Assembly (NCBI RefSeq): GCF_000143415.4
Contig: NW_003314334.1
Location: 814,108 to 878,107, forward strand
Source: Selaginella moellendorffii
Lineage: Eukaryota > Plantae > Lycopodiophyta
Direction: 5' to 3'
DNA length: 64,000 nucleotides
Below are positions 21,609 to 50,098 of the stretch, one piece after another; positions within the stretch are counted from its first letter, which is position 1; each line of letters opens with the position of its first letter. The notes under the pieces were generated by a model. It saw only the letters and a program-made list of their open reading frames with translations. It was not told the origin of the DNA and did no database searches. The translations under genes and the position numbers were made by a program.

Positions 21609-22262
21609 ATGGCTCTCTCCAAATCTCACGCTGTCTCGATTGCTTTGCTCGCATTCTTCGTGTGCGCAGTAGTTTCATCCGATCCAGATCCACTCCAGGA
21701 CTTTTGCATCGGAGATCTCAACGTCGTCCCCGGGATCAATGGATTCCCATGCAGGAACACGTCCACAGTCACGGTGGACGATTTCATCTACAGCGGAATC
21801 GTCAACTCCTCCAACACCACAAACATCAATCGCTCTGGCGCAATCTTTGGAACCGTGGTGAGATTCCCAGGCCTCAACACTTTGGGTCTCTCTATCGCTA
21901 GGCTCGACTTTCTCCCGGAAGGGATCATCCCTCCACACACCCATCCCAGAGCCTCGGAGATGGTCTACGTAGAAGAAGGGACCGTCTACGCCGCCATCGT
22001 CACAGCGGACAATCGCCTGTTTGCCCGAGTGATGAACAGGGGAGAAGTCATGGTGATTCCTCGCGGATTAATCCACTGGCAGATGAACGTGGGAAGGACC
22101 AACGCGAAGATCATCGCCACTCTCAACTCCCAGCTTCCCGGAATCCAGTTCATTGCAAGATCCATGTTTGGATCTCGGCCAGAGGTTCCCGACGAGGTGC
22201 TCGAGAAGACTTTTTTCTTGGATGAGCGTGGCATCAACCAAGTCCGATCCAACTTCGTATGA
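21609..22262 (+). CDS. Germin-like protein type A, copy 3
   Basis: 217-aa ORF with signal peptide and germin boxes. Confidence 0.96.
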   Translation: MALSKSHAVSIALLAFFVCAVVSSDPDPLQDFCIGDLNVVPGINGFPCRNTSTVTVDDFIYSGIVNSSNTTNINRSGAIFGTVVRFPGLNTLGLSIARLDFLPEGIIPPHTHPRASEMVYVEEGTVYAAIVTADNRLFARVMNRGEVMVIPRGLIHWQMNVGRTNAKIIATLNSQLPGIQFIARSMFGSRPEVPDEVLEKTFFLDERGINQVRSNFV

Positions 22263-24076: not shown

Positions 24077-24730
24077 ATGGCTCTCTCCAAATCTCACGCT
24101 GTCTCGATTGCTTTGCTTGCATTCTTCGTGTGCGCAGTAGTTTCATCCGATCCAGATCCACTCCAGGACTTTTGCATCGGAGATCTCAACGTCGTCCCCG
24201 GGATCAATGGATTTCCATGCAGGAACTCGTCCACAGTCACGGTGGACGATTTCATCTACAGCGGAATCGTCAATTCCTCCAACACCACAAACATCAATCG
24301 CTCCGGCGCAATCTTTGGAACCGTGGTGAGATTCCCGGGCCTCAACACTTTGGGTCTCTCCATCGCTAGGCTCGACTTTCTCCCGGAAGGGATCATCCCT
24401 CCACACACCCATCCCAGAGCCTCGGAGATGGTCTATGTAGAAGAAGGGACCGTCTATGCCGCCATCGTCACAGCGGACAATCGCTTGTTTGCCCGAGTGA
24501 TGAACAGGGGAGAAGTCATGGTGATTCCTCGCGGATTAATCCACTGGCAGATGAACGTAGGAAGGACCAACGCGAAGATCATCGCCACGCTCAACTCCCA
24601 GCTTCCCGGAATCCAGTTCATTGCAAGATCCATGTTTGGATCTCGGCCAGAGGTCCCGAACGAGGTGCTCGAGAAGACTTTCTTCTTGGACGAGCGTGGC
24701 ATCAACCAAGTTCGATCCAACTTCGTATGA
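24077..24730 (+). CDS. Germin-like protein type A, copy 4
   Basis: 217-aa ORF, germin boxes (VPNEVL variant). Confidence 0.96.
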   Translation: MALSKSHAVSIALLAFFVCAVVSSDPDPLQDFCIGDLNVVPGINGFPCRNSSTVTVDDFIYSGIVNSSNTTNINRSGAIFGTVVRFPGLNTLGLSIARLDFLPEGIIPPHTHPRASEMVYVEEGTVYAAIVTADNRLFARVMNRGEVMVIPRGLIHWQMNVGRTNAKIIATLNSQLPGIQFIARSMFGSRPEVPNEVLEKTFFLDERGINQVRSNFV

Positions 24731-31341: not shown

Positions 31342-31995
31342 ATGGCTCTCTCCAAATCTCACGCTGTCTCGATTGCTTTGCTTGCATTCTTCGTGTGCGC
31401 AGTAGTTTCATCCGATCCAGATCCACTCCAGGACTTTTGCATCGGAGATCTCAACGTCGTCCCCGGGATCAATGGATTCCCATGCAGGAACTCGTCCACA
31501 GTCACGGTGGACGATTTCATCTACAGCGGAATCGTCAACTCCTCCAACACCACAAACATCAATCGCTCCGGCGCAATCTTTGGAACCGTGGTGAGATTCC
31601 CGGGCCTCAACACTTTGGGTCTCTCCATCGCTAGGCTCGACTTTCTCCCGGAAGGGATCATCCCTCCACACACCCATCCCAGAGCCTCAGAGATGGTCTA
31701 CGTAGAAGAAGGGACCGTGTACGCTGCCATCGTCACAGCGGACAACCGCCTGTTTGCCCGAGTGATGAACAGGGGAGAAGTCATGGTGATTCCTCGCGGA
31801 TTAATCCACTGGCAGATGAACGTGGGAAGGACCAACGCGAAGATCATCGCCACTCTCAACTCCCAGCTCCCCGGAATCCAGTTCATTGCGAGATCCATGT
31901 TTGGATCCCGACCAGAGGTGCCGGATGAGGTGCTCGAGAAGACTTTCTTCTTGGACGAGCGTGGCATCAACCAAGTCCGATCCAACTTCGTATGA
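31342..31995 (+). CDS. Germin-like protein type A, copy 5
   Basis: 217-aa ORF from ATG 31342, germin boxes. Confidence 0.96.
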   Translation: MALSKSHAVSIALLAFFVCAVVSSDPDPLQDFCIGDLNVVPGINGFPCRNSSTVTVDDFIYSGIVNSSNTTNINRSGAIFGTVVRFPGLNTLGLSIARLDFLPEGIIPPHTHPRASEMVYVEEGTVYAAIVTADNRLFARVMNRGEVMVIPRGLIHWQMNVGRTNAKIIATLNSQLPGIQFIARSMFGSRPEVPDEVLEKTFFLDERGINQVRSNFV

Positions 31996-34406: not shown

Positions 34407-36677
34407 TCACCAGTAATCTCCGCAAGAGCACGTCCCGTTGCTAAAGTGATGGAACCGGCTAGCGTCTCTCACGGTTATAGATCGTCCCACCATCTTGGAC
34501 ACAAACTTGATAGCCGAGTGGCAATCCCCGCACACCCGCAAGTTCTTGAGGATCCTCAGCGGCGACCCTTGCTCCGTGCTTATCAATCCAAAAGCCACAG
34601 CCATTTTCTCGCTGTGGTAGTGCAGCAGCTCCTCCTTCTGCTCCTCGCCAACGTCATGCAAGATCTCCTTTGTGTCGGGAACGTAGCCAGCGTCTCGCAT
34701 TTCTCTCGCCAGCCTCTGGAGCTCCACGACGATGTCTTCGCTGCGAGGATGCGAAAGATCCCCCACCACGAAACTGTGAACTTCACTGCCAACTTCGATG
34801 TTGCTGATCCCCGGAACTTTTCTCACTCGCCTCGACTTCATCAGGTTCCGGATCATCGATACCTTGTCCCTCCTCCCGATCGACGAGTACATGTTCGAGA
34901 GAACGACGTAGGCAGTCGTGTAGCCGGGCTCCAGCTCGAAGATCTTCGCTGCGACTCTCTCAGCACAGTCGGCATGGCGGTGGAGGCGACAAGCTCCCAG
35001 CAGCGACATCCATATCACCACGTCCGGAAGAAATGGCATCGAGTTGACGAGCTCCTCGGCGCTTAGAGTTCTTCCGGATCGACCCAGGATGTCGATCATG
35101 CAGCAGTAGTGTTCTCTCCTTGGCACCATCCCAAAGTCTTGGCTGATCGAGACGAAGTGTTCCCAGCCCTCGGCCACGAGACCGACATGGCTGCACGAAG
35201 TTAGAACGCTCCGGAACGTCACCTCGTCCGGCTTGACGCCATCGAGATTCATAAGCTGGAAGACTTCCACTGCTCGATCGTAGTGCCCGTTTTGCGCATA
35301 AGCCCACACCATGGTCGTCCAGGAAACCAAGCTGCGCATCTTCATGCTTTCAAACACGCTCCTGGCGGCGCCGAGATCACCCAAGTTGACGTAAACTTGC
35401 GTGAGTGCTGTCCAGCAGACGATGGTCTTGCGCGGGATCTCGTGGAAGAACCTCACGGCCTCGTCAAAATGCCCATTCTCGGCATACGCGAGGAGCATCA
35501 CGCTCCACGAGACTGGATTCTTCTCCGGGATTTTATCGAAGATGTTCTTTGCGAGGGCGACGAAGCCTTGGTGGCCGTAAGCCTGCACCATCGCCGTCCA
35601 CGTCACCACGTCTTGATCCGGCATGGTATCAAAGATCTCTCTCGCGGTGGCCAAATCCCCTCTTTGAGCATTCACCAATATCATCGTCGTTCGTGCCACT
35701 GCGTTGGTGAAGGGGAGACGATGGAACGCCCTGTCCGATTCTTCCAGGAATCCATTCTGCGCGTAGCACAGCAGTAGATTCGTCCACGACACGAGATCCT
35801 TGGCCGGCATTCGATCAAAGATCGATTTTGCTGCCTCAATTTGCCCCTGGTGCGCGAGCGCTGTGATCATCGAGTTCCACGTCACGGCCTGGCGCTCTGG
35901 GACGCGATCGAACATAGCCTGGCAGCCACGGATCCGAGATGCCGCCACATACGCGGCGATCATCGCGTTCCACGAGACAAGATCGCGGAACTCCATCCCA
36001 TCAAACGTGTTCTTGGCAAGCTCAAGATGCCCGGACTGGGCATAGAGTGTGATGAGCGAGTTCCAAGAGACCACGTCGTGATCCGGCATGGAATCGAAGA
36101 TCTTCTTCGCCTGATCGAGATTGGAGCTCCGGATGTAGGACTGCACGACCGCATTGCAGGACACGAGATTCCACTGCGACATTCGATCGAAGAGGCTCTT
36201 GGATCTCGCGATATTCCCCTCCCTGGCAAATGCGATCACCAGTGCGTTGCAAGAACAGACGTCGCGATGGGGCATTCGATCGAAGAGCCGAGCCGCGGCG
36301 TCGATTGAACCCTGCGCGGCATAGGCGTGGATCATCACGTTCCAGGTCGCGGCGTCGCGCTGGGGGATGCGATCGAAGAGCTCGGCGGCGCTGGAGGTGT
36401 GCCCGGCGGCGCGGCTGGCCTGGATCATCATGTTCCAGGAGTAGAAATTTCGGCGATCCATGGCGTCGAAGAGTGATCGCGCGTCCGCAGCGCTGCTGCA
36501 GCGCCCATACATCTGGATGAGGAGATTCGCGAAGAAAATGTCCTTGGCGGCACTCTTGTCGGGGAAGAATCTGGCGTGCAATCGCCGGGCCTGGAGGAGA
36601 TCCTTGCCACGGCCAGCAGCCCTCACGAGATCCGCCAGGAAATGCCGCTCTTCTAGCCCTGCGATCGCAGCAGTCAT
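34407..36677 (-). CDS. PLS-class PPR protein with E and DYW deaminase domains (organellar C-to-U editing factor)
   Basis: Long run of 31-aa PPR motifs, PG box (RKVPGISNIEV), HSE..CGDCH zinc motif, C-terminal CSCGDYW; intronless; probable start MTAAIAG. Confidence 0.94.
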   Translation of the reverse strand: MTAAIAGLEERHFLADLVRAAGRGKDLLQARRLHARFFPDKSAAKDIFFANLLIQMYGRCSSAADARSLFDAMDRRNFYSWNMMIQASRAAGHTSSAAELFDRIPQRDAATWNVMIHAYAAQGSIDAAARLFDRMPHRDVCSCNALVIAFAREGNIARSKSLFDRMSQWNLVSCNAVVQSYIRSSNLDQAKKIFDSMPDHDVVSWNSLITLYAQSGHLELAKNTFDGMEFRDLVSWNAMIAAYVAASRIRGCQAMFDRVPERQAVTWNSMITALAHQGQIEAAKSIFDRMPAKDLVSWTNLLLCYAQNGFLEESDRAFHRLPFTNAVARTTMILVNAQRGDLATAREIFDTMPDQDVVTWTAMVQAYGHQGFVALAKNIFDKIPEKNPVSWSVMLLAYAENGHFDEAVRFFHEIPRKTIVCWTALTQVYVNLGDLGAARSVFESMKMRSLVSWTTMVWAYAQNGHYDRAVEVFQLMNLDGVKPDEVTFRSVLTSCSHVGLVAEGWEHFVSISQDFGMVPRREHYCCMIDILGRSGRTLSAEELVNSMPFLPDVVIWMSLLGACRLHRHADCAERVAAKIFELEPGYTTAYVVLSNMYSSIGRRDKVSMIRNLMKSRRVRKVPGISNIEVGSEVHSFVVGDLSHPRSEDIVVELQRLAREMRDAGYVPDTKEILHDVGEEQKEELLHYHSEKMAVAFGLISTEQGSPLRILKNLRVCGDCHSAIKFVSKMVGRSITVRDASRFHHFSNGTCSCGDYW

Positions 36678-36759
36678 CCGCCATGGAAGATTCCTAATTT
36701 TTGGTTCCCAAGAAAGAGGGAAATTTTTTGCTAGGGTTCTTTGTCTCGCCCTCTCTCCG

Positions 36760-38255
36760 ATGGGAGATCTTCCGCCGATTGGAGAGCGCGACAGGAAAAT
36801 CCCTTGGCCGCCCGTGGTCGTGATCGAGAATGTGGCCACGACATACGATCGGCAGCTCAGGAAGCACAGAGGTATGGAGAACAGAGAAATTCGCGCAGCG
36901 ATCGAAGAGGTGATCAAGGTCGAGGATCGGCGTTTGATTCCCTTGTACAACTACGAGGGCCAGACTAGCCGCGCGTTCTTGGTCTTTCCGAGCACCGAGA
37001 TCGGGTATGAGAATGCCGTGAGAGTCCATGATGCGTTCGCTCCTCGTCGCGAGTCCAGGAGGAATGGGCAACTCTATGGATACCTCGCTACTCCAGAGGA
37101 TATGAAGCGCCTGGATTCAAACAAGAAAGCACTCCGGAACTGGACGATCGAGAGCCTCGAGGAGAAAGTTTTGAGGCCTCGGAGGGAGGCACTCCAGGTG
37201 CGATAGAAGCTTTCTTCTTTCTTTCTTTCTTTCTTTCGTGATCTTCCTCTGTCTCAAGTTTTTTTCTTTTGCGCTGTTGTTGTAGGAGTATGAGCGCGCG
37301 AAGCAGCTCCAGATCCAACTCCAGCAAGAGAATGACGCCGCCGAGAGCGCGCTCCACAACGACAGCCAAAAGGCAGCGATTTTGCAGGAAGAGCTGGCGA
37401 GAAAGAAGGAAGAAATGGAGAAGGAGAAACGCCTCCGAAGAGAAATCAAGGAGGCACATGAGCGTGAGGTAGGATTTCGATGGGCTCTCGTTGTTTTGAT
37501 CTTGTCTTTCGTTTTCCAGATGAAGAAGCGAAGGTCACAGCTCGAGGCCCAGCGGGAGATGGTGCTCCGGAGCTGCCGCCGAGAAAACGAGGAGCTCTTC
37601 GAGAGCCTGAAGAAAAAGCGTGAGGAGACCGACGCGGAGATCGCCAAATACCAGGAGGAGGAAAAAGCTCTGCGGCAAAACATAGACTCTCGCAACAAGG
37701 AGCTCCAGTTAAGTTTTCATTCTCTGTCGAGGATACTTATGCTCTGTTTTTCTTCTTTTCTTTGATTGTTCTCAGGAAGTTTGAGAGGCTTCTCAGCGAG
37801 CAAGGCCTTCAGATGAAAATAGGAGAAAGGCTTGCGGCGCTCAAGGAAGAGCAGCACAAGAGGATGATGGCACTCAGAACTCGCTACAACGAGGAGCGCT
37901 TGCAAGTAAGTACCGCAAGTCTCATCCCTTTCCTTCCCTCATTCTTCTTTCATCTTCTCCTTGGAATTTCCAGCTCGCCCAGCAGAAGCAGGCAAAGGAG
38001 AAGCAACTCCTGGAGGAGCAGCTGCGGAAGAAGGAGGAGCTCGCCCAGTCGATCAAATCGGACGAGAAGAACGCCAAGAACGAGAACTGTATCATCTGCA
38101 TGGAGAAGTTCTCGTTGCGGCGAGGTCTCTATGGTTGCGGCCACTCGTACGTTTGCGAGGAATGCTTACCAGCGGTATGGGGGGCGAAGAAGGAATGCCC
38201 GATTTGTAGGCACCCGCAGAAAAAAATGCCCATTCTCACCCATGTTTACTCGTAA
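36760..38255 (+). CDS. XS-domain (SGS3-like) / coiled-coil / C-terminal RING-HC protein, 5 exons, about 406 aa
   Basis: Exons 36760-37197, 37286-37468, 37520-37707, 37776-37905, 37974-38255 (all GT-AG, 1221 nt, frame intact). XS motifs IPWPPVVVIEN, GMEN, GYENAVRVH, QLYGYLAT; E/K/R/Q-rich coil; CIIC-x12-CGHSYVCEEC-x10-CPIC. Confidence 0.88.
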
Positions 38256-38357
38256 ACTTAGCCAACCTTTTGGCAAGTTTAGCGCTAATATCATGCAAAC
38301 TTTCATGATACGTGGTTAGGATCAAGACAAAACTTTTATTTCTGAAACGTCGTAGCC

Positions 38358-39005
38358 TTAAGAAAACTGCGACTTAAGCTGGCGGACAATGGACTCGTCA
38401 AGGAAGAAAGTTTTGGCCAGCACGTCGTCTCTAATCCCAGATCCGAACATGGACCTCGCGATAAGCTGCGCTCCAGGGTTCTGCTGCGAGTTGAGGGTGG
38501 CGATGGCCTTGGCCGGAGTGTCGCCCACATTGAGCTGCCAGTGAATGAGCGCGCGGGGGATCACCAAAACATCGCCCTTGTTGAGGATTTTGGCGAAGAG
38601 CCTGTTGTCTTGGGTCACAAAGCCGGCGTACAAGCTCCCCTCCTCGACGTAGACGAGCTCGGACGCGAGGGGGTGCGTGTGTGGAGGAATGAGGCCTCCC
38701 ACCGCGAAGTCGAGGCGTAGGATTGCGAAGCCGAGGGTGTTGAGACCCGGGAACGTTTGCACGATGCCTGGGAAGCTGTCGGCTCCGTAAGCGTTGCTTG
38801 TGTTGGCGGGCGTGGCGAGGCTGAAAACGAAGTCGTCGATGGTGGCGGCGTAGTAGTCCTTGCATGGATAGCCGTTGATGGTGAGGTTGAGGGTGAGATC
38901 GGCGACGCAGTAGTCCTGGAGGGGATCGGGATCGGCGGAGTGGCAAGGAAGGATGACTGCTGCAAGTGCCACCATCGCCAATCGCAAGAGAATGGATGTA
39001 GCCAT
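38358..39005 (-). CDS. Germin-like protein type B, copy 1
   Basis: Signal peptide, DPDPLQDYCVAD, GLIPPHTHPLASE, KGDVLVIPRALIHWQLNVG. Confidence 0.95.
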   Translation of the reverse strand: MATSILLRLAMVALAAVILPCHSADPDPLQDYCVADLTLNLTINGYPCKDYYAATIDDFVFSLATPANTSNAYGADSFPGIVQTFPGLNTLGFAILRLDFAVGGLIPPHTHPLASELVYVEEGSLYAGFVTQDNRLFAKILNKGDVLVIPRALIHWQLNVGDTPAKAIATLNSQQNPGAQLIARSMFGSGIRDDVLAKTFFLDESIVRQLKSQFS

Positions 39006-46631: not shown

Positions 46632-47285
46632 TTATACAAAGTTGGATCGGACTTGGTTGATGCCACGCTCGTCCAAGAAGAAAGTCTTCTCAAGCACCTC
46701 GTCCGGCACCTCTGGTCGGGATCCAAACATGGATCTCGCAATGAACTGGATTCCGGGGAGCTGGGAGTTGAGAGTGGCGATGATCTTCGCGTTGGTCCTT
46801 CCCACGTTCATCTGCCAGTGGATTAATCCGCGAGGAATCACCATGACTTCTCCCCTGTTCATCACTCGGGCAAACAGGCGATTGTCCGCTGTGACGATGG
46901 CAGCGTACACGGTCCCTTCTTCTACGTAGACCATCTCTGAGGCTCTGGGATGGGTGTGTGGAGGGATGATCCCTTCCGGGAGAAAGTCGAGCCTAGCGAT
47001 GGAGAGACCCAAAGTGTTGAGGCCCGGGAATCTCAGCACGGTTCCAAAGATGGCGCCAGAGCGATTGATGTTTGTGGTGTTGGAGGAGTTGACGATTCCG
47101 CTGTAGATGAAATCATCCACCGTGACTGCGGACGAGTTCCTGCATGGGAATCCATTGATCCCGGGGACGACGTTGAGATCCCCGATGCAAAAGTCCTGGA
47201 GTGGATCTGGATCGGATGAAACTACTGCGCACACGAAGAATGCGAGCAAAGCAATCGAGACAGCATGAGATTTGGAGAGAGCCAT
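46632..47285 (-). CDS. Germin-like protein type A, copy 7
   Basis: 217-aa ORF from ATG 47285, germin boxes. Confidence 0.95.
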   Translation of the reverse strand: MALSKSHAVSIALLAFFVCAVVSSDPDPLQDFCIGDLNVVPGINGFPCRNSSAVTVDDFIYSGIVNSSNTTNINRSGAIFGTVLRFPGLNTLGLSIARLDFLPEGIIPPHTHPRASEMVYVEEGTVYAAIVTADNRLFARVMNRGEVMVIPRGLIHWQMNVGRTNAKIIATLNSQLPGIQFIARSMFGSRPEVPDEVLEKTFFLDERGINQVRSNFV

Positions 47286-47711: not shown

Positions 47712-48043
47712 GAGATAGACGCTGTCAAGAACAGCGAAGCCAGTGGCGACGCCTTTCCTTGACTTTGCGTCAGTCACGGTGCCAGTATGATTCGTTGAAC
47801 GCTAACTGAACTTTATTCTGAAGCGCATCTCTCTTCCAATGGAACGCTTTCTGTGTGAGTGCAATCTTTGTTTGGATATATGCTTCGTCCACTTATAATT
47901 ATGTTTTTCTCTTTTCTTTGTTTCGCAGTGATGGGCATCTTGTCGCAGTTGCCTACTACAGATCAGGCTACGCACCCGATGATCCTTCCGAGCTGGTATA
48001 TGTCAGTCATTCGTGGCTATTTCTTTATTTTCGTTTTGTTTCG
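47712..48043 (+). pseudogene. Glutathione synthetase fragment carrying the same inversion junction as 30870
   Basis: Reverse complement of about 30583-30905; [21 protein letters not shown] on +, GVATGFAVLDSVYL on -. Confidence 0.85.
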
Positions 48044-49262
48044 TTCTTCTCGTCCGATTTGATTGACTGGGCGAGCTCCTCCTTCTTCCGCAGCTGCTCC
48101 TCCAGGAGTTGCTTCTCCTTTGCCTGCTTCTGCTGGGCGAGCTGGAAAATCCAAGGAGAAGATGAAAGAAGAATGAGGGAAGGAAAGCAATGAGACTTGC
48201 GATACTTACTTGCAAGCGCTCCTCGTTGTAGCGCGTTCTGAGTGCCATCATCGTCTTGTGCTGCTCTTCCTTGAGCGCTGCAATCCTTTCTCCTATTTTC
48301 ATCTGAAGGCCTTGCTCGCTGAGAAGCCTCTCAAACTTCCTGAGATCAATCAAAGAAAGGGAAAACACAGAGCATAAGTATCCTCGACAAAGAATGAAAA
48401 CTTAACTGGAGCTCCTTGTTGCGAGAGTCTATGTTTTGCTGCAAAGATTTCTCCTCCCTCTGGTATTTGGCGATCTCCGCGTCGGTCTCCTCACGCTTTT
48501 TCTTCAGGCTCTCAAAGAGCTCCTCGTTTTCTCGGCGGCAGCTCCGGAGCACCATCTCCCGCTGGGCCTCGAGCTGTGACCTTCGCTTCTTCATCTGGAA
48601 AACGAAAGACAAGATCAAAACAACGAGAGCCCATCGAAATCCTACCTCACGCTCATGTGCCTCCTTGATTTCTCTTCGGAGGCGTTTCTCCTTCTCCATT
48701 TCTTCCTTCTTTCTCGCCAGCTCTTCCTGCAAAATCGCTGCCTTTTGGCTGTCGTTGTGGAGCGCGCTCTCGGCAGCGTCATTCTCTTGCTGGAGTTGGC
48801 TCTGGAGCTGCTTTGCGCGCTCATACTCCTACAAAGGCTTGCGGCGCTCAAGGAAGAGCAGCACAAGACGATGATGGCACTCAGAACACGCTACAACGAG
48901 GAGCGCTTGCAAGTAAGTACCGCAAGTCTCATCCCTTTCCTTCCCTCATTCTTCTTTCATCTTCTCCTTGGAATTTCCAGCTCGCCCAGCAGAAGCAGGC
49001 AAAGGAGAAGCAACTCCTGGAGGAGCAGCTGCGGAAGAAGGAGGAGCTCTCCCAGTCGATCAAATCGGACGAGAAGAACGCCAAGAACGAGAACTGTATC
49101 ATCTGCATGGAGAAGTTCTCGTTGCGGCGAGGTCTCTATGGTTGCGGCCACTCGTACGTTTGCGAGGAATGCTTACCAGCGGTATGGGGGGCGAAGAAGG
49201 AATGCCCGATTTGTAGGCACCCGCAGAAAAAAATGCCCATTCTCACCCATGTTTACTCGTAA
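48042..49262. pseudogene. Rearranged partial copy of the XS-RING gene (exons 2-5' inverted, then exon 4-5 forward)
   Basis: 48042-48833 is the reverse complement of about 37280-38073; 48833-49262 is a direct copy of about 37826-38255; the XS exon is absent. Confidence 0.9.
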
Positions 49263-49450
49263 ACTTAGCCAACCTTTTGGCAAGTTTAGCGCTAATCTCA
49301 TGCAAACTTTCTATTGTTTCATCCACGCGATCATGCTGGAGATAAGGTCCCACGAGGGAGTTGCACGCGGTGTTCCATTTCCTCCTTCAAAGGAAAACTA
49401 TAAGCCCATGATATGTGGCAAAGGATCAAGACAACTGAAATGTCGTAGTC

Positions 49451-50098
49451 TTAAGAAAAATTCGACTTAAGGTGGCGGACAATGGACTCATCAAGGAAGA
49501 AAGTTTTGGCCAGCACGTCGTCTCTAATCCCAGATCCGAACAAGGAACTCGCGATAAGCTGCGCTCCAGGGTTCTGCTGCGAGTTGAGGGTGGCGATGGC
49601 CTTGGCCGGAGTGTCGCCCACATTGAGCTGCCAGTGGATGAGCGCGCGGGGGATCACCAAAACATCGCCCTTGTTGAGGATTTTGGCGAAGAGCCTGTTG
49701 TCCTGGGTCACAAAGCCGGCGTACAAGCTCCCCTCCTCGACGTAGACGAGCTCGGACGCGAGGGGGTGCGTGTGTGGAGGAATGAGGCCTCCCACCGCGA
49801 AGTCGAGGCGTAGGATTGCGAAGCCGAGGGTGTTGAGACCCGGGAACGTTTGCACGATGCCTGGGAAGCTGTCGGCTCCGTAAGCGTTGCTTGTGTTGGC
49901 GGGCGTGGCGAGGCTGAAAACGAAGTCGTCGATGGTGGCGGCGTAGTAGTCCTTGCATGGATAGCCGTTGATGGTGAGGTTGAGGGTGAGATCGGCGACG
50001 CAGTAGTCCTGGAGGGGATCGGAATCGGCGGAGTGGCAAGGAAGGATGACTGCTGCGAGTGCCACCATCGCCAATCGCACGAGAATGGATGTAGACAT
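49451..50098 (-). CDS. Germin-like protein type B, copy 2
   Basis: 215-aa ORF, near-identical to 38358-39005. Confidence 0.95.
   Translation of the reverse strand: MSTSILVRLAMVALAAVILPCHSADSDPLQDYCVADLTLNLTINGYPCKDYYAATIDDFVFSLATPANTSNAYGADSFPGIVQTFPGLNTLGFAILRLDFAVGGLIPPHTHPLASELVYVEEGSLYAGFVTQDNRLFAKILNKGDVLVIPRALIHWQLNVGDTPAKAIATLNSQQNPGAQLIASSLFGSGIRDDVLAKTFFLDESIVRHLKSNFS

Follow-up and report, generated by a model that had tools for sequence, protein, structure and literature searches.

The XS-domain proteins SGS3 and IDN2/FDM are central to the amplification of small interfering RNAs (siRNAs) and to RNA-directed DNA methylation in plants, and the XS domains that have been characterized, those of SGS3 and IDN2, both bind RNA duplexes with 5' overhangs. 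To our knowledge, all characterized XS-domain proteins are RNA-binding scaffolds without enzymatic modules. Here we describe a gene of the lycophyte Selaginella moellendorffii whose product combines an XS domain, situated almost at its N-terminus, with a long predicted coiled coil and a C-terminal RING finger. The gene lies at 36760-38255 on the plus strand of a 64,000-nt stretch of DNA (assembly GCF_000143415.4, NW_003314334.1 positions 814,108-878,107, forward strand), which as a whole is referred to below as the window.

A protein of this kind has been mentioned once in the literature. In one sentence, Morozov et al. 2018 (PMC5907777) describe the S. moellendorffii XS protein XP_002979112 as having no zf-XS and a C-terminal RING, and use it as an argument that the species has no true SGS3, the zf-XS being taken in that paper as characteristic of functional SGS3. 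According to the same paper, S. moellendorffii is reported to lack both the trans-acting siRNA (tasiRNA) machinery and canonical SGS3. XP_002979112 agrees with the protein considered here in species and architecture and may be the product of the window locus, of an allele or of a paralog; it served Morozov et al. 2018 (PMC5907777) as a negative SGS3 example, with no family analysis and no function given. A literature search that combined XS domain, E3 ubiquitin ligase and SGS3 found no paper. The original prediction for this locus, made from the DNA letters, did not recognize the architecture as a characterized one, which stands insofar as the protein is functionally uncharacterized and has to be qualified by that one earlier mention of the architecture.

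The same prediction described an intact gene of five GT-AG exons with a frame of about 406 residues, an XS domain almost at the start and a RING at the end, and our analysis bears this out. All introns begin with GT and end with AG, and the five exons join into 1221 nt, that is 406 codons and a TAA, with no internal stop. The gene and its coding parts are laid out as follows:

36755..38288, plus strand: approximate transcript, from RNA data (the X1 contig reaches 36600; stranded raw reads start at about 36755)
36760..37197, plus strand: exon 1, codons 1-146, with the start codon, the XS domain and the post-XS linker (Pfam; RNA junction 37197/37286)
36790..37107, plus strand: part of exon 1 coding for the XS domain, aa 11-116, of RRM-like predicted fold (Pfam PF03468, profile against PDB, AF2 and Foldseek)
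37286..37468, plus strand: exon 2, codons 147-207, predicted coiled-coil helix (frame, RNA, AlphaFold model)
37520..37707, plus strand: exon 3, codons 208-269 and 2 nt, predicted coiled-coil helix, donor GTTAAG (frame, RNA, model)
37776..37905, plus strand: exon 4, 1 nt and codons 271-313, predicted coiled-coil helix (frame, RNA, model)
37974..38255, plus strand: exon 5, codons 314-406 and TAA, with the end of the helix, a short low-confidence linker, the RING and a conserved basic tail (Q-K-K-x-P)
38088..38207, plus strand: part of exon 5 coding for the RING-HC, C352 to C391, with eight zinc ligands (Pfam zf-C3HC4_3, alignment with RNF8, 4AYC)

A search from the exon-1 reading frame found SELMODRAFT_418832 (P0001, 406 aa), a protein for which the database lists the Pfam domains XS and RING. 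Alignment of the window model with this protein needs no indels and shows identity at 399 of 406 residues; of the seven differences (Q32E, N121K, I178L, E181Q, E253R, A257S, and K298R), two affect the XS part and five the helix, and the RING exon has none. Because the two are colinear and differ at only these seven residues, the window locus is, to judge by sequence, either an allelic form of the annotated gene SELMODRAFT_418832 or a copy that arose very recently. Domain searches were run on individual exons and the full-length steps were carried out on the database protein P0001, while the joined five-exon translation was used for the frame check, the comparison with P0001, the heptad test and one row of the XS tree.

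Transcription and splicing of the gene are documented by RNA from three studies. The four introns (88, 51, 68, and 68 nt) are all skipped in transcript contigs from two of them (X1 and X5), and a single X1 contig of 1414 nt (36600-38288) crosses every junction, so that exon 1 is joined to the RING exon within one transcript, a connection on which the original prediction had made its own case depend. In raw RNA-seq data (X23 and X24, runs of 2026) each intron is skipped by between 1 and 6 junction reads. The first mates of reads in the gene body always lie on the minus strand, which in most types of stranded library points to a plus-strand RNA, and the flanking genes show the reverse orientation. 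An additional 5' exon upstream, hinted at by a joint at 36539/36600 in one X1 contig, was rejected: over 71 nt its sequence shows 5 mismatches, it falls in antisense orientation within the neighboring pentatricopeptide repeat (PPR) gene described below, and it is covered by no stranded reads.

The XS domain was recognized in exon 1 by Pfam (PF03468) at 52.2 bits against a cut-off of 25, over aa 11-116 and profile positions 1-112 of 113, with a score of 50.1 bits for the XS of the allele P0001. A profile made from two sequences of the XS region returned a single match from the PDB, namely 4E8U (E 0.0017), which comprises the IDN2 XS and a piece of its coiled coil. The AlphaFold (AF2) model, built on a family alignment of 19 rows, has a mean predicted local distance difference test score (pLDDT) of 79.5 and folds aa 13-132 into a beta-alpha domain with pLDDT mostly 75-93. 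Foldseek placed chains A and C of 4E8U at the top (E 1.5e-6 and 3e-6, respectively), followed by canonical RNA recognition motifs (RRMs), and by this model the protein has an XS domain with an RRM-like fold like that of the solved IDN2 XS. The XS-defining residues W16, P17, P18, F76, G82, A86, and G107 are invariant or nearly so in the family identified below, and the linker that follows the domain, W-x-I-E-S-L-E-E-K-V-x-R-P, is conserved with Diphasiastrum.

No Pfam family was matched by exons 2-4. The long coiled coil that had been proposed between XS and RING appears in the AF2 model as one unbroken helix of aa 133-338 (~205 residues), in which pLDDT mostly exceeds 90 as far as about residue 250 and whose composition is dominated by E (20%), L (13%), K (12%), R (12%), and Q (11%). 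Its local enrichment at heptad positions a and d was equalled in only 2 of 500 shuffles. We consider the coiled coil to be a well-founded prediction that is probably correct.

The C-terminal exon scored 40.3 bits with Pfam zf-C3HC4_3 (cut-off 27) and 32.8 bits, also above cut-off, with zf-RING_2. The spacing of its zinc ligands is as had been claimed, C-x2-C-x12-C-x-H-x3-C-x2-C-x10-C-x2-C over aa 352-391, and the ligands themselves (C352, C355, C368, H370, C374, C377, C388, and C391) have the canonical cross-brace spacing. Four positions are used by RING E3 ligases to contact and activate the E2: the residue ahead of the second Cys, which is hydrophobic, an aromatic side chain within the RING helix, the Pro of C-P-x-C and a basic "linchpin" that follows the final Cys. 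An alignment of 11 family members, which range from Chara to Selaginella, shows no change at any of the eight ligands or at the Pro of C-P-x-C; an I or V precedes the second Cys in every member, most have an aromatic W or F in the RING helix, and nine have R or K directly after the last Cys. The window RING has I354, W382, P389, and R392 at these positions and aligns with C-I-I-C ... C-P-I-C-R of RNF8 (4AYC), the best sequence match of exon 5 in the PDB, in an alignment that covers the preceding coil as well as the RING. By its sequence, the RING has thus kept the residues with which RING E3s hold and activate E2~ubiquitin.

That the architecture fits neither SGS3 nor IDN2/FDM, as the original prediction had stated, was confirmed by Pfam from both ends of the protein. 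The zf-XS (PF03470) gave no match to exon 1 even with E values of up to 1 admitted, nor to P0001, and the XH domain (PF03469) found none in P0001 or in any exon, the C-terminus being occupied by the RING. The prediction had also argued that no room was left upstream for a zf-XS, and the neighboring gene agrees with this:

34407-36676, minus strand: PPR-E-DYW gene of RNA-editing type, with PPR repeats, E motif and DYW deaminase by Pfam

This gene stands head to head with the XS-RING gene, and the two start codons are about 85 bp apart (the PPR start, at about 36676, was placed by eye from the open reading frame). Plus-strand reads of the XS-RING gene begin at about 36755, and tblastn searches of the 64-kb window with the zinc-motif regions of longer relatives gave chance-level matches only (E >1). 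The Selaginella paralog and two Diphasiastrum orthologs likewise start directly with the XS domain. Because the start codons are so close, a promoter region common to both genes is probable.

A long subfamily of XS-RING proteins and a large XS-only family do carry a motif, C-x2-C...H...H-R, in the position of the zf-XS, 35-44 residues before the XS domain (in the relatives P0027 at 89-120, P0028 at 343-374, P0076 at 92-127, and P0095 at 56-89). We do not name it a zf-XS, as Pfam PF03470 gives no match; on its sequence and position it may be a divergent or ancestral XS zinc finger.

The prediction had suggested that the protein may be lineage-specific, and in this respect it was wrong, as the same architecture is present in Diphasiastrum, in Chara braunii, in transcript clusters and in a second Selaginella gene. 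A word-index search with the XS region found one more protein with XS and RING, O6H91_11G118200 of Diphasiastrum complanatum (P0003, 464 aa), which is 31% identical to the window-gene protein end to end and has the same domains, the post-XS linker and the Q-K-K-x-P tail included. An exhaustive HMMER search with an XS-plus-linker profile then gave 211 matches, nine of which score above 134 bits before the next falls to 92. Since the protein library holds one representative per 50% cluster (the cluster of the query is seemingly represented by the fragment P0002), family members can be hidden in this census. Membership, defined as XS plus C-terminal RING, was checked by pattern and Pfam, with the following result:

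Selaginella paralog: XP_024525141 / XP_024519004 (P0012 / P0170), 416 aa, XS and RING
Diphasiastrum, three genes: two short forms of 453 and 464 aa and one long form of 600 or 611 aa, XS and RING
Chara braunii: CBR_g4468 and CBR_g51477, XS and RING
Four transcript clusters: 482, 578, 669, and 863 aa, the largest with 32 and 35 members, XS and RING
Klebsormidium nitens: GAQ79151, XS and a RING-like C-terminus that Pfam did not confirm

The XS domain of the 669-aa cluster (P0008) is ~80% identical to that of the Ginkgo fragment Gb_10240, and an N-terminal extension is common to both, for which reason this cluster is probably derived from a gymnosperm. Among the named proteins of the XS-RING group, none from an angiosperm appeared in the HMMER census of the 50%-cluster library. 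With the architecture found also in Chara braunii, and a RING-like variant in Klebsormidium, the family dates back to streptophyte algae; as far as sequences allow it to be traced, the XS-coiled coil-RING family is an old streptophyte family of Chara, lycophytes and probably gymnosperms. Two further searches contributed no members. A word-index search with an 11-member full-length alignment was dominated by low-complexity words, gave 3 matches from 8000 candidates and was not used for the census, and the ESM Atlas, queried with P0001 and with residues 330-863 of P0028, returned only generic XS/zf-XS clusters at 0.76 and no usable relatives. As to nomenclature, the near-identical 416-aa entries of the Selaginella paralog are named by NCBI "vicilin-like seed storage protein At2g18540" and "protein SUPPRESSOR OF GENE SILENCING 3 homolog", neither of which fits a protein with XS and RING.

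The relationship of the family to other XS proteins was examined in a quick IQ-TREE analysis (131 XS domains, 173 columns). The proteins with a RING, together with truncated forms related to them, make up one group of 22 rows with a Shimodaira-Hasegawa-like approximate likelihood ratio test (SH-aLRT) value of 80, and its core of 16 rows has a value of 93. This group joins, at 85, a clade of 51 rows (SH-aLRT 97), whose sampled members have zf-XS and XS and of which one is named "Suppressor of gene silencing". The window XS falls outside that SGS3 clade, while IDN2-like proteins (P0013 and P0198) and the large XS-only family are found elsewhere in the tree. A Marchantia XS-only model of 237 aa lies inside the XS-RING group, and Marchantia is represented in both clades. 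Similarly, the XS-RING and SGS3 lines coexist in Klebsormidium, as beside GAQ79151 there is a separate SGS3-like protein, GAQ92898, cited by Morozov et al. 2018 (PMC5907777). The best current reading of these sequences is that the XS-RING family is sister to SGS3, a placement that is not settled because the support is moderate and the domain short.

By analogy with the systems that share its parts, the XS-RING protein is most likely a coiled-coil, RNA-binding RING E3 ligase. The suggestion made in the original prediction, that such a ligase may be brought to dsRNA or to SGS3-type complexes, is a reasonable hypothesis. How it would work can be sketched with somewhat more confidence than doubt: through the helix, two chains would associate in parallel orientation in the manner of IDN2 and RNF8, which would set a pair of XS domains and a RING dimer at opposite ends; the XS pair would dock on an RNA-protein particle or on an RNA, for which a duplex with a 5' overhang is the analogous case, and the RING pair would ubiquitinate either proteins bound to that RNA or the ligase itself. 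Several of our results weigh against this account. The XS domain is short, lacking ~26 residues that precede the L-Y-G-Y-L-A strand in the Diphasiastrum ortholog, and at 52 bits it scores low in comparison with the 100-120 bits of SGS3 XS domains, for which reasons its RNA binding could be weakened or changed. Within the model the RING (aa 350-400) has a pLDDT of 64-70 only, and the segment 334-349 in front of it is below 50. Global heptad periodicity of the helix was not significant in the shuffle test and no single register was found, and since a homodimer prediction with two copies of aa 140-406 (score 0.00) gives no verdict, dimerization rests on analogy. Tree support for the family (80) and for its place beside SGS3 (85) is only moderate, coming as it does from a quick search of ~170 columns. 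Finally, ligase activity and RNA binding are predicted properties in every member of the family.

Many RRMs are protein-binding or otherwise repurposed modules, and it is feasible that the protein is an E3 ligase whose shortened XS has become such a module, with no link to RNA silencing. This would agree with the absence of the ~26-residue loop of the orthologs and with a score well under those of SGS3 XS domains, and the PDB searches gave no complex of an XS domain with RNA in which the RNA-contact residues could be checked. We nevertheless hold it to be unlikely, because the residues that define the XS domain have been kept throughout the family, the fold is closest to that of the IDN2 XS, and the XS domains of both SGS3 and IDN2 are binders of RNA duplexes with 5' overhangs. 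The opposite emphasis, in which the protein is a substitute for SGS3 that binds and protects RNA templates for RNA-dependent RNA polymerase and in which the RING is a zinc-stabilized knob for dimerization or interaction and not a ligase, draws on the XS motifs W-P-P-V-V-x-I-E-N and L-Y-G-Y-L-A, on the tree position beside the SGS3 clade and on the NCBI name "SUPPRESSOR OF GENE SILENCING 3 homolog" given to an allele of the paralog. It can also appeal to Morozov et al. 2018 (PMC5907777), who treat XP_002979112 as the only SGS3-like protein of a species that lacks the TAS machinery. We rate a substitution of this kind as quite unlikely: the XS-RING line exists side by side with separate SGS3-like proteins in Klebsormidium (GAQ79151 and GAQ92898) and in Marchantia, which has members of both clades; the zf-XS that PMC5907777 regards as characteristic of functional SGS3 is missing; and the E2-contact features are kept family-wide, which would not be expected of a purely structural knob.

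There remains the question of whether the gene is decaying or mis-annotated, that is, a pseudogene or a chimeric model with no function of its own. A rearranged partial copy 10 kb away (48042-49311) and a 195-aa fragment model in the reference annotation (SELMODRAFT_418831) might be taken in this sense. Set against them are a frame that is open over five exons, the presence of all junctions on the right strand in RNA from three studies, XS and RING domains that are both intact, and an alignment that runs from end to end with long-separated lycophyte orthologs in which all RING ligands are kept, and decay or mis-annotation therefore appears extremely improbable to us. The XS-RING gene is a real and expressed gene, and as its locus was already annotated it adds nothing beyond the picture of the family; the coiled-coil E3 ligase directed to RNA is the reading of its product that we prefer.

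RNA reads over the gene also revealed variation. Combinations of variants in 36780-38030, for example 36853 C>G, 37122 C>G, 37379 A>C, 37600 C>T, and 37859 A>G, agree neither with the window copy alone nor with P0001 alone, which suggests from these sequences that more than two alleles or copies of the XS-RING gene are expressed in the plants that were sequenced.

The partial copy, ~10 kb downstream at 48042-49311, is rearranged and has no exon 1, hence no XS domain. Exons 2 to mid-5 are inverted at 48834-48042 with 96.9% identity to the gene, and abutting this piece is a direct copy (48833-49311, 99.2%) that extends from mid-exon 4 through the stop codon and the 3' end and has an intact RING exon. 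SELMODRAFT_418831 (P0002, 195 aa) resembles the annotation of a partial copy of this kind, but has the last 32 residues of exon 1, which are missing there. Together the two pieces make up an inverted repeat, 48042-48289 / 48833-49080, of 248 nt and 96% complementarity with a spacer of 543 nt. Exons 4-5 and intron 4 of the gene are the origin of this repeat, which is predicted to fold into a long and almost perfect stem (minimum free energy, -658.8 kcal/mol over 1066 nt). From this predicted folding it is possible that the repeat is a hairpin source of siRNAs against the parent gene.

Germin-like cupin genes form a cluster in the same region. One, at 38358-39005 (minus strand), converges on the XS-RING gene, with 3' ends almost touching, and is expressed much more highly. 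A copy 95.8% identical to it, at 49451-50098 (minus strand), follows next after the partial XS-RING duplicate; Cupin_1 scores 126 bits for these two copies. Weaker copies, of ~66% DNA identity, are located near 46668-47215, 31412-31959, 24147-24694, and 21679-22226.

What the XS-RING gene contributes is chiefly the definition of a family and of its age, the locus itself being annotated, expressed and noticed once before. A conserved sister line with a RING suggests that RNA recognition and ubiquitination have an unexplored connection in non-flowering plants, one that would have been missed because Arabidopsis and the crops seem to be without the XS-RING line. The finding is also relevant to the interpretation of the SGS3 absence reported for Selaginella, and to the names that databases give to the paralog. 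A more speculative extension, which we think very doubtful as a whole, would see in the family an ancient branch of RNA silencing in streptophytes that the flowering plants have lost: a ligase docked on RNA would mark the proteins found on the aberrant or cleaved RNAs that SGS3 recognizes and so couple small RNAs to protein turnover, no other RNA sensor of the SGS3 type would remain in Selaginella, and siRNAs from the hairpin could feed back on the gene.

Compared with the systems that have been described, the window protein resembles SGS3 in having an XS domain of the same type (with the W-P-P...I-x-N start and the L-Y-G-[YF]-L-A strand) that is directly followed by a long coiled coil, and differs from it in the lack of a zf-XS, the added C-terminal RING, an almost absent N-terminal region and the shorter XS. 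With IDN2/RDM12 and FDM/IDNL it has in common an RRM-like XS that runs straight into a coiled-coil helix, 4E8U being the best structural match; unlike these proteins, which group elsewhere in the tree, it has neither zf-XS nor XH and carries the RING in the place of the XH. In the order of its parts, a recognition domain, a long coil and a terminal RING, it agrees with RNF8 (FHA, coiled coil, RING), with which it also shares C-I-I-C and C-P-I-C-R. The recognition domain of RNF8 is however an FHA, for phosphopeptide, where the window protein has an XS, for RNA, and the likeness is thus an analogy of design together with general RING homology, with no sign of orthology. A last point of comparison is provided by MEX3C, Roquin and MKRN, which likewise combine an RNA-binding module with a C-terminal RING, that of MEX3C being among the PDB matches of exon 5. 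In those proteins the RNA-binding module is a KH, ROQ or CCCH domain, whereas here it would be the XS, with a long predicted coiled coil separating the two modules, in a family that belongs to plants and streptophyte algae.

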